Assembly (NCBI RefSeq): GCF_964204645.1 | Contig: NC_134032.1 | Coordinates: 8,854,275 to 8,918,274 of the forward strand | DNA length: 64,000 nucleotides | Reading direction: 5' to 3' | Source: Tubulanus polymorphus | Lineage: Eukaryota; Animalia; Nemertea | In this document: one piece after another, positions 28,801 to 62,185 of the stretch | How positions within the stretch are numbered: position 1 is the stretch's first letter | Layout: each line of letters begins with the position of its first letter | Translations under genes and position numbers: made by a program | The notes under the pieces: model-generated | Seen by the model: the letters and a program-made list of their open reading frames with translations, nothing else | The model's database searches: none | What the model was told of the DNA's origin: nothing

Positions 28801-31800
28801 GGCGCCCACTACTGCAAGCCCAACAACGATGGCGCCCACTACTGCAAGCCCAACAACGATGGCGCCCACTACTGCAAGCCCAACAACGATGGCGTCCACT
28901 ACTGCAAGCCCAACAACGATGGCACCTACCACTGCAAGCCCAACAACGATGGCATCCACTACTGCAAGCCCAACAACGATGGCGCCCACAACTGCAAGCT
29001 CAACAACGATGGTATCCACTACTGCAAGCCCAACAACGATGGTGCCCACTACTGCAAGCCCAACAACGATGGTGCCCACTACTGCAAGCCCAACAACGAT
29101 GGTATCCACTACTGCAAGCCCAACAACAATGGTGCCCACTACTGCAAGCCCAACAACGATGGCGCCCACAACGAATATAAAAGGTACGTTTTTAAATAAA
29201 AAGCTAAGTGAAAATCGGAAAAAAACATCCACTGTCCACGACTTGCTCAGTGTTGATATGTTTATATCATTCTATAGATTGCTCGCTCGGTCGTTATCGA
29301 TGTGCCAGCGGTCTGTGTATAATGAAAGAATGGTTATGCGATGGACAAGAGGACTGTCCATCTGGGGAAGATGAGAAAAATTGCGGTAAGGCTAATCAAT
29401 TAACCTCGCAGAAACGTCGCACGGGATTCACCTTTTTAAACTAGAATTAATGAGCGCGATTTTAATTTTCAATTTCAGTGAATTGTGAGTTTACGTGTAA
29501 GAACTATCAATGCATCAGATTGAGTGGACGATGTAACGGCGTTTACGATTGTAGCGACAGGTCGGACGAATTTAACTGCCGTAAGTTCTAACCATGCCAT
29601 CAAACCCATTCAGGAATTACCATTTCATTTTAAAGAAAACGATACTTTTTATCAGTTAACGACTTATTTATGGTAAACATGTCATTTTTCTTCGGCTCCT
29701 CGCGTTCTGCGATTCATAACGGATGATTCGACTCAATTTTCAGTGCGAATTCAGTCCCAGCCGGGTGCTGTTCAGATTTACAGAAGTATCGGTGTATGGC
29801 TACCATTGTGCATGGACAAAGTGGACCGCTCGTTCGCTGATAGCGTTTGTCGCGAAATTGGAGCGAAGTAAGAAAATATTTGTATGCTTTTTACCGCTTG
29901 AATGAAATAAGGAATATATCTTCACAGAAAATTCAGCTCCTGCGATAGTTTTTAAGGTTAAACTTCAACGAATAGGGCCAACCCATGAGTCGATTTAACA
30001 TAAACCTGATCGATGAAATCGAATCGATTTATATTTCTTAGTTAATCCATTTTGTTAAACCTGACCCCGGATTAGAATAAGTTCATTCTCATTTATTCAT
30101 ATCTTAAAAGACTTAAAATTTCAATTCAGCTTGGGTATAACCGGCTGATTGCTGACAGATCTAACGAAAAGTCTCAACTGTTCAATCGATTTGATTTCTT
30201 CACTTAATACTAAAAGTCGATATCCAGCAAATTTATTTTTCAAAGAAAACTCCACTCTTTCTACGCGGAAAACTACTCTAAAGGCCACGGGACTATAAAA
30301 TCAAACTTTTTTATGCGAGAAATTATGTTTCAGAAATATGTATGCTCATTACGTCGATTTCTATTTAACGGAATCTAAGCGCGATAATTGTTTATTTCAA
30401 TTCTACTTATTTTAGATCTGTGAATAGCTACGGCTCAATGGATGTCGGCGCAGAGTCACGATTTATGTTAAAATCTACTGCCACGGCAGAAGTGAATCTA
30501 ACTGTGATCAACGAAAGGTAATTTCAGTTGAAAATTGACCTCAATTCGCCAAATAAATTCACTATTGAAAATACAGATTTTCGGTCGTTTTTCTAATCTG
30601 CATCAGCGGTCAAAGAAAAAATAATTCGTTTTTCATTTTCGTTTTTCAGCAATAACTGCCCATCCGGGAAACTGCTGAACATTTCCTGTAGCCAACGAAG
30701 TGAGTCTCAATCATATGAATCGCGACCTTGGTTTCGCGCTATGTATTATGTTAACTGTGATATGTATGTAACGTATATTGGTGGAGATTGGGCGCCATAT
30801 TCTTTTGATTTTCTCAAAATCGGCCACCATAGCCAAGGATGTTAATTAAAACTTGAATCGGGGGTCGTACTAATCGAAAATGAACCATTTCTATCTTAAA
30901 GAGTAGAATACAACCAAGAACAAGGGGAAATTGTCCCAATGTATTTATAAAAGGCCATTATAGTCAACTTCAGTGGTTCAGAGATTTCTGGAGCCACGCA
31001 CTATAACACCCCTCGTGCTCGAATACATAATTCCACGGTCAACCCGTCAAACCTTCAACAGGACAATCCCCTAGTGTTAGGGCCAAATAGCCAACTCGAT
31101 CATTTCATTCTTCTGTACACAGGTTGCGGTAAGCCTAATTCGAATCTGCTAGCGCCTTACGTAGTGAACGGACAGGATGCGGCCGAGGGAAGGTGGCCCT
31201 GGCAAGTGGCTCTTTTCGAGTTTTCAATTCACGTCTGCGGCGCTAGTTTGATAAGCGAACGCACTATAATCACCGCCGCGCACTGCATCACTAAGTACGT
31301 ATTCCCAACAAACATGATCGCTTTCATTAATCCATCTATGACGTCATAAATAGAAGTAACTCAGGGAAATTTGAAAGCTGCCTGTCATGAACGTTAGATC
31401 TCCGTGATGACACTAAGCTATGAAGCTCTTGCATCAAATTACCTGGTGATTCGTTTTGAAATGACAAGCTAAATGAAAGATCTTTCCAAAAAACAGGATC
31501 CACTTTCATAGACTTGTATCAACTTCAATCCAGGGGCTAACTAATTTGAAAACTGATTGAGTTATCCTCCGGCGTAAATGTTACCAGTAACTGGCCCCAT
31601 TTATTCATGATCTACCCTTCTATGACATCATCAAATTTCTTAAATGGCCTTATTACTCGTTTTCAAATGATATGCAAATTCCATCCACTGACAAAGCCAT
31701 TAAATCATCATCAACTGTCATCATTTTTCGTGTCGCAGGGAGTATTACGACAGGCCGGATTTGTACGAGGTTCGTCTGGGCACGAAATATCGAAGCAAAC

Positions 31801-62185: not shown

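Follow-up and report, generated by a model that had tools for sequence, protein, structure and literature searches.

A protein search with one protease exon assigned the window analyzed here, a stretch of 64,000 nucleotides (C8:8854275-8918274) from a genome of 268 Mb, to the palaeonemertean ribbon worm Tubulanus polymorphus (Nemertea) and to its gene LOC141910238, whose model product, XP_074657056.1 (P0002), is annotated as an 'uncharacterized protein'. The spliced exon joins of the gene's first, second and third protease domains, hereafter SP1, SP2 and SP3, are exact substrings of this model at its residues 292, 1385 and 1990; positions within the protease domains are given below in chymotrypsin numbering. 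The predicted order of modules is a tail, a transmembrane segment, SEA, mucin, SEA, mucin, LDLa, SRCR, SP1, three MAM/LDLa units, LDLa, SRCR, SP2, LDLa, SRCR and SP3, and LOC141910238 probably encodes a type II membrane-anchored, enteropeptidase-like nemertean polyprotease. Open frames, canonical splice sites and intact catalytic triads rule out a pseudogene.

A six-frame motif scan identified exactly three activation-type motifs on the plus strand with a downstream (A/G)HC histidine motif, LAPY↓VVNG, STSY↓VLNG and VSPY↓MIGG (arrows, scissile bonds), confirming the junctions that an earlier note on this DNA had read, with Tyr codons at 31158, 45096 and 58196. Each protease domain is encoded by four exons, all twelve of which have canonical AG/GT borders and lie, like every other feature described below for this gene, on the plus strand. 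Pfam Trypsin (PF00089) matches 9 of the 10 exons tested above the 20.6-bit cut-off (21.7-52.4 bits), with SP1 exon 3 giving no match.

The four SP1 exons are located at 31123..31294 (Cys1 linker, LAPY↓VVNG with its Tyr codon at 31158-31160, and His57), 31739..32025 (Asp102 and Cys122; Pfam Trypsin E=4.7e-12), 32351..32496 (ending in Ser189-Ile190-Cys191-Pro192, 32485-32496) and 32945..33101 (GDSGGP with Ser195, Met216 at 33017 and Ser226 at 33050). A perfect (GAGAGG)x19 microsatellite (32028-32140) starts two bases past the donor site of the second of these exons. SP2 is encoded at 45061..45232 (STSY↓VLNG, Tyr codon 45096-45098, and His57), 45739..46007 (Asp102), 46627..46763 (ending in Ser189-Val190-Cys191-Gln192, 46752-46763) and 47220..47382 (GDSGGP, Phe216 at 47292 and Asn226 at 47331), and SP3 at 58155..58338 (VSPY↓MIGG, Tyr codon 58196-58198, and His57), 60507..60805 (Asp102; Pfam Trypsin E=8.3e-14) and 62046..62185 (ending in Thr189-Ala190-Cys191-Gly192, 62174-62185). 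The outer limits previously given for the protease region, 31123 and 62185, prove to be true exon borders, namely the first base of SP1 exon 1 and the last base of SP3 exon 3. The fourth and last SP3 exon, carrying GDSGSP, Gly215-Gly216, an 8-residue insertion in the 220s loop, Asp226 and the stop codon, is found 2034-2225 bases past the window end (L009:4034-4225), and because of this location the SP3 pocket at positions 216 and 226 was beyond the earlier note's view. The last SP3 intron also contains a ~130-bp stretch (~63330-63470) that occurs at at least 30 other places on many contigs with 73-86% identity, as well as a ~60-bp repeat near 63915-63980, whose copies are 85-93% identical; short interspersed elements are the probable source of both.

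The protease domains are separated by long stems. Between SP1 and SP2 (33356..44537), mapping of XP_074657056.1, MAM/LDLa signatures in open frames and precomputed Pfam MAM, LDLa and SRCR_2 matches define three MAM modules interleaved with LDLa, then four more LDLa modules and an SRCR domain, while open frames and mapping of the same model place about seven LDLa modules and an SRCR domain between SP2 and SP3 (48452..57244). Ahead of SP1, LDLa modules and an SRCR stem occupy 29208..30842 (Pfam Ldl_recept_a E=5.7e-12 and a weak SRCR match), a region that the model covers only in part and whose exons we take as one block.

Further upstream, the locus extends well beyond the RefSeq model. Tandem Repeats Finder detects a second mucin-like array of 30 bp x 27 at 28364..29169, with ~88% matches between copies and all three frames open, and the XP_074657056.1 start codon falls inside it, at 28799, in a model without a transmembrane segment, which suggests a 5'-truncated annotation. 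The second SEA domain lies at 27521..28187 (Pfam SEA E=5.7e-11 on 27521-27727) and is preceded by a giant mucin-like exon, rich in Thr, Ser, Pro and Gln, at 21926..26749 (a 1608-aa open frame), in which a 36-bp unit repeated ~124 times spans 22309-26602 (Tandem Repeats Finder) and over which the GC skew is strongly negative (-0.4 to -0.55). Exons of a first SEA-like module are found at 19879..21409 by tblastn with residues 198-338 (72-86% identity) of the product of the tandem paralog LOC141910239 (P0154), which itself has a Pfam SEA domain. Finally, a probable 5' exon encoding the cytoplasmic tail and signal-anchor transmembrane segment, outside the RefSeq model, is located at 18184..19146, where a 321-aa open frame with a hydrophobic end shares 54% identity with residues 10-199 of P0154, the paralog's transmembrane segment included. 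By homology, the transmembrane, SEA and mucin exons probably belong to the protease transcript, and we consider the product a probable type II membrane protein with a 5'-truncated model, because the upstream anchor, SEA and mucin exons match the N-terminus of P0154 exon for exon and because the ortholog from the nemertean Lineus longissimus has a tail, a transmembrane segment (at about residues 181-203) and SEA-like and mucin regions followed by LDLa, SRCR and SP1.

His57, Asp102, Ser195, Asp194 and the usual cysteines are intact in SP1, SP2 and SP3, a CGK motif precedes each activation site, P(I/A)C(V/L)P is found at position 122, and the residues after the Tyr form an Ile16-type N-terminus (V/M-V/I/L-x-G). 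The best relatives in the PDB are the enteropeptidase light chain (E=1e-54 for SP1), matriptase, TMPRSS2 and hepsin, and PDB-anchored alignment places the activation Tyr opposite the enteropeptidase P1 Lys and residue 189 opposite its Asp189. Counted back from Cys191 and Ser195, residues 189-191 read SIC, SVC and TAC, and the earlier statement that no domain has Asp189 holds. Fold prediction was made for SP3 only and bears on the fold, not on pocket size: the AlphaFold2 model (predicted local distance difference test score of 90, predicted template-modeling score of 0.90, low confidence in the 220s-loop insertion) superimposes in Foldseek on TMPRSS2, matriptase, enteropeptidase and thrombin with template-modeling scores of 0.8-0.9. 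With a stem of the kind found in the transmembrane serine proteases of type II (TTSPs; SEA, LDLa, SRCR and MAM modules), a pro-segment Cys1-Cys122 tether, an Ile16-type N-terminus, Asp194 and the triad, all three zymogen domains are, judging by these residues, built for classical activation. The TTSP rule of Arg/Lys activation combined with Asp189 is broken throughout, as P1 is Tyr in all three domains and Asp189 is replaced by Ser (SP1 and SP2) or Thr (SP3), within 189/216/226 triplets of Ser/Met/Ser, Ser/Phe/Asn and Thr/Gly/Asp, respectively. The scissile bond follows a Tyr; trypsin-like enzymes would therefore be unable to switch the protein on, and its activator would have to accept a large aromatic P1 residue.

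The best full-length relative, Lineus longissimus LOC135503121 (P0151), has 2675 residues, 41% identity over the whole query and the same Pfam content, with three Pfam Trypsin stretches, and comes from a different nemertean class than Tubulanus. Its activation sites and pocket triplets are RPY↓VVHG with Ser/Met/Ser in SP1, TTY↓MTNG with Ser/Phe/Asn in SP2 and TTY↓VIGG with Thr/Gly/Asp in SP3, so that P1 and residues 189, 216 and 226 are identical at all 12 positions between the two species at domain identities of 48, 41 and 42%. If sites were independent, the chance of such identity would be roughly 0.44^12, or ~5e-5, and the pro-segments of the two proteins have diverged despite the kept P1 Tyr. 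The earlier note had tied its proposal to the conservation of the P1 Tyr in orthologs, and Lineus keeps it at all three sites, so that the proposal is not refuted on this count; the note's caveat regarding positions 216 and 226, Met/Ser in SP1 and Phe/Asn in SP2, is likewise real and conserved in this species.

Tyr at P1 is rare elsewhere. From ~130 Pfam Trypsin exon matches in the Tubulanus genome, we sampled 39 other first exons or intronless genes and found Arg or Lys at 36 of the 39 S1-family activation sites, the remainder being one Leu, one Phe and one Gln, with no Tyr. Of the 621 S1 domains of the collected homologs, 463 have Arg or Lys at P1 and 18 have Tyr, the latter mostly in the same spiralian clade as the nemertean domains. 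The Tyr pattern is beyond chance. The Ser/Met/Ser, Ser/Phe/Asn and Thr/Gly/Asp triplets occur, among the same 621 domains, only in the two nemerteans, and we know of no characterized enzyme with any of them.

Several other proteases came to light in these searches. The only non-Arg/Lys sites besides the single Gln among the 39 sampled belong to two intronless S1 genes with Asp189, L047 (C2:28455252-28456148) and L048 (C2:30262427-30263335), whose predicted sites are TGL↓IVSG and RGF↓VVGG. A multi-copy protease family, with L055, L056, L062, L063 and L070 among its loci, combines a WR↓IISG site with an unusual Asn189/Gly216/Gly226 pocket, and the top multi-domain match of a representative search was P0001, a database protein of 4066 residues with 14 consecutive S1 domains.

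A maximum-likelihood tree of 60 domains (quick search; support from the Shimodaira-Hasegawa-like approximate likelihood ratio test (SH-aLRT) only; some long branches) places the nemertean domains in one spiralian clade of nemertean, annelid, bryozoan and mollusc sequences (SH-aLRT 93) that comprises two branches. The SP3-type branch unites Tubulanus SP3 and its paralog, Lineus SP3, domain 2 of the Owenia protein and both Watersipora domains, with Gly216 in 6/6 members. The SP1/2-type branch groups SP1 and SP2 of the nemerteans with Owenia domain 1 and with many mollusc 'corin-like' proteins, each represented by its single domain, and position 216 is non-Gly (Val, Met, Phe or Ala) in all 18 of its 18 members. 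P1 is mostly Tyr or Phe in the spiralian clade and Arg in its sister clade of echinoderm polyproteases; it is Arg or Lys in all cnidarian, amphioxus, hemichordate and fish (Hoplias) TMPRSS9-like tree domains with a recognizable activation site, as it is in tetrapod TMPRSS9 and ovochymase domains, which were checked separately. Parsimony on the tree gives six P1 state changes, consistent with a single shift from basic to aromatic at the base of the clade and a scatter within molluscs, where some bivalves, cephalopods and gastropods have Val, Asp, Leu, Met or Ile and a single Batillaria domain has Arg. We found no paper describing the spiralian clade or its Tyr/Phe sites in a limited keyword-based literature search.

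On this tree, the three Tyr sites appear as one inherited trait kept under constraint: the change took place once, in an ancestor, and was multiplied by duplication of the domain, a single origin that rules out separate gains of Tyr in the three domains. Several elements of the earlier interpretation change accordingly in weight. Co-occurrence of P1 Tyr and Asp189 loss in three modules had been offered as support for a cascade and loses that force, as the Tyr sites share one ancestral change and subsequent duplication. Neither is a Tyr P1 coupled to the loss of Asp189, given that P1 is still Arg in other non-Asp189 proteases of this genome and in non-Asp189 domains of echinoderm, cnidarian and frog polyproteases, nor is the trait tied to the three-domain arrangement, as aromatic P1 residues are also found in the single-SP1-type mollusc homologs and in the single-SP3-type paralog. 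Activation by a non-tryptic, aromatic-directed cut is nevertheless a well-supported candidate for a conserved requirement, because Lineus keeps Tyr at all three sites and Tyr or Phe dominates P1 in annelids, bryozoans and molluscs. That part of the proposed self-contained, non-tryptic cascade stands, whereas its picture of three Tyr-cutting modules is not supported as stated, among other reasons because the pockets of SP1 and SP2 look elastase-like.

Residues 189, 216 and 226, from which we read the pockets, are credited as a triplet with 'relatively good predictive value' for specificity (PMC8537139). Enzymes with Ser/Gly/Ala and Thr/Gly/Gly are chymases, whereas bulky residues at 189 and 216, as in a Leu/Val/Ser triplet, are read as elastase-like and as barring aromatics (PMC8537139). 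The chymotrypsin-type combination of Gly216, a small residue 226 and Ser, Thr or Ala at 189 is found in none of our three domains, where Ser189 alone fits. The SP1 and SP2 pockets should be closed and elastase-like, because of the bulky residue at 216 together with a side chain at 226, and both domains should be poor candidates for cutting after Tyr; they probably cleave after small or medium residues and would be unable to self-activate at their own Tyr sites.

SP3 follows a different rule, that of pockets with an acidic residue 226. Asp226 is silent only if shielded by Val190 and Val216; rat trypsin D189G/G226D keeps its basic specificity with Lys preferred over Arg, and fiddler-crab collagenase with Asp226 has a broad specificity (PMC7914634), while cathepsin G (Ala/Gly/Glu) cleaves after Phe and Tyr but also after Lys (PMC8537139). 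SP3, with Thr189, Ala190, Gly216 and an unshielded Asp226, fits this pattern, as do its paralog and Lineus SP3. An open pocket whose acidic floor is exposed would be expected, and it could take Tyr/Phe, Lys/Arg or both; the claim that the protein has no tryptic domain is insecure, since Asp226 next to Gly216 and Ala190 can keep Lys/Arg or dual specificity (PMC7914634, PMC8537139). Judged by these pockets, SP3 would be the only plausible internal activator.

The paralog bears directly on this point. LOC141910239 lies at C8:8992824-8997787, ~72 kb downstream of the last exon of LOC141910238, and encodes a protein of 1704 residues in which a tail, a transmembrane segment, SEA, mucin, LDLa and SRCR regions are followed by a single SP3-type protease, 83% identical to SP3 and with the same VSPY↓MIGG site and Thr/Gly/Asp pocket. 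The SP3-type domain occurs there alone, and its activation therefore needs neither SP1 nor SP2.

We therefore arrange the domains in a tentative order, the likeliest of those considered but one to which we give not quite an even chance, in which SP3 acts as an internal, Tyr-directed activator of SP1 and SP2. SP3 would be activated first, through trans-autoactivation at the membrane or through the action of a secreted chymotrypsin-like protease; once active, it would cut the Tyr sites of SP1 and SP2. SP3-type and SP1/2-type domains occur together in nemerteans and in an annelid, TTSPs commonly autoactivate in trans, and solved structures of TMPRSS11A and TMPRSS11D are titled as complexes of each with its own activation motif. 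Several points weigh against this order. Mollusc homologs have a single SP1-type domain with a P1 that is mostly Tyr or Phe, and the activator there is not in cis; the constraint has exceptions, as some bivalves and cephalopods have Val, Asp, Leu or Met at P1; with Asp226, SP3 could be specific for Lys/Arg and not accept Tyr; and Tubulanus has several genes for Arg-activated proteases whose pockets are open and lack Asp189 (Ala/Gly/Ser, Ser/Gly/Ala and Ala/Gly/Gly, with residue 189 assigned in this survey by a heuristic across an intron).

These last enzymes could act as external activators and lead to a purely external alternative, which we regard as nearly as likely and in which a secreted chymotrypsin-like protease, such as a trypsin-activated digestive enzyme, would cut all three Tyr sites, making the polyprotease a downstream effector or amplifier and not a self-starting system. 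Arg-activated proteases with Ala/Gly/Ser and Ser/Gly/Ala pockets are available in Tubulanus for such a role, and the mollusc proteins, where a single SP1-type domain with an occluded pocket still carries a Tyr/Phe P1, would need an outside activator; vertebrate enteropeptidase is likewise activated by other proteases. External activation accounts less readily for the fact that nemerteans, an annelid and a bryozoan have kept an SP3-type domain with Gly216 alongside an aromatic P1, for the unchanged activation site of the single-SP3 paralog and for the trans-autoactivation usual in TTSPs.

The earlier proposal that all three domains are chymotrypsin-like through Ser/Thr189 and auto- or cross-activate after Tyr within one polypeptide now appears improbable. 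Ser189 of SP1 and SP2 is indeed the chymotrypsin state, P1 is Tyr three times over, and the single-domain mollusc proteins that combine Ser/Val/Asn with P1 Tyr would be most simply explained if such a pocket accepted Tyr. Yet Met216/Ser226 and Phe216/Asn226 are kept across nemertean classes, residue 216 is Val, Met, Phe or Ala throughout the SP1/2-type clade, and bulky residues at these positions are read as barring an aromatic P1 (PMC8537139). Least probable of all is that the Tyr sites go uncleaved, in single-chain enzymes or non-activated binding modules where Tyr is tolerated drift: P1 does vary in some molluscs, but Tyr is kept three times and Tyr/Phe in three further phyla while neighboring pro-segment residues diverge, and the domains retain the Ile16-type N-terminus, Asp194, the Cys1-Cys122 tether and an undamaged triad.

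Returning to SP3 as the internal activator, a broader and more speculative model, which we consider rather unlikely as a whole, would extend it to an ancient spiralian membrane-tethered zymogen system insulated from trypsin. In such a system, a single switch from Arg to Tyr/Phe within an enteropeptidase-like clade would have been followed by a division of labor in which a self-priming SP3-type initiator fires elastase-like SP1/2-type effectors, the two types being fused in nemerteans and annelids and maybe split between genes in molluscs. A word-based search for SP3-type domains in molluscs returned generic polyproteases only (TMPRSS9, ovochymase and enteropeptidase), a blank made uninformative by the length filter and word index.

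Several known systems share parts of this arrangement. Polyserase-1/TMPRSS9 is a membrane-anchored protein, as LOC141910238 probably encodes, and its single chain likewise holds three S1 domains that each have an activation site of their own (PMC1435904). Its domains, however, are directly tandem with Asp/Gly/Gly pockets and P1 Arg/Lys, and the third is inactive (His-Asp-Ala), whereas LOC141910238 has three intact triads, P1 Tyr, no Asp189 and long MAM/LDLa/SRCR stems between domains. The nemertean domains are not orthologous to those of TMPRSS9, as the spiralian clade stands apart from the Hoplias TMPRSS9-like and amphioxus TMPRSS9-annotated proteins in the tree. Amphibian ovochymase-1 likewise has a single chain with three protease domains whose pockets differ in type, including one of the chymotrypsin kind (Ser/Gly/Ala), and a tryptic internal cascade is possible there from its sequence; unlike LOC141910238, its three sites have P1 Arg, two of its domains have Asp189, and it is a secreted protein with CUB domains and without the transmembrane, MAM and LDLa architecture.

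Non-basic activation is itself not without parallel, as insect ModSP/HP14 and horseshoe-crab factor C are mosaic initiators that autoactivate at, or prefer, a non-basic bond, with LDLa modules in ModSP/HP14. Factor C is cut at a Phe-Ile bond. These proteins, which we liken to LOC141910238 by description, differ from it as soluble hemolymph proteins with a single protease domain, a microbial-ligand trigger and a P1 Leu or Phe; ModSP is described as 'chymoelastase-like' with a P1 Leu preference (PMC10732536). For the SP3 pocket, the nearest counterparts are cathepsin G, duodenases and fiddler-crab collagenase, which share a non-acidic residue 189, Gly216 and an acidic residue 226 unshielded by Val190 and Val216, although residue 189 is Ala in cathepsin G and Thr in SP3, which also has its 8-residue insertion in the 220s loop. 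Residue 189 is Asn in duodenase and Gly in crab collagenase, and cathepsin G, duodenases and crab collagenase are all small enzymes, secreted or located in granules, whose activation takes place after Arg/Lys or by removal of a dipeptide.

The closest resemblance is to enteropeptidase (TMPRSS15), the best solved-structure relative of all three domains, which likewise has SEA, LDLa, MAM and SRCR modules and a disulfide-tethered light chain; it differs in its single protease domain with Asp189/Gly216/Gly226 and P1 Lys and in its CUB domains, none of which were found by Pfam in the Lineus ortholog or in the precomputed Pfam list of XP_074657056.1. By this comparison, LOC141910238 is in its architecture the closest spiralian counterpart of enteropeptidase, with all functional statements about it being predictions from sequence.

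In Tubulanus, as in every polyprotease compared, S1 zymogens are opened overwhelmingly after Arg or Lys, which ties them to trypsin-driven networks. A Tyr/Phe switch in large membrane proteases of at least four invertebrate phyla would amount to a circuit that trypsin-like enzymes cannot trigger, and the three domains of LOC141910238 form a natural system for testing how specificity depends on residues 189, 216 and 226. What activates this spiralian counterpart of enteropeptidase, the closest in architecture, and what it cleaves are relevant to the initiation of gut or surface protease cascades outside vertebrates.

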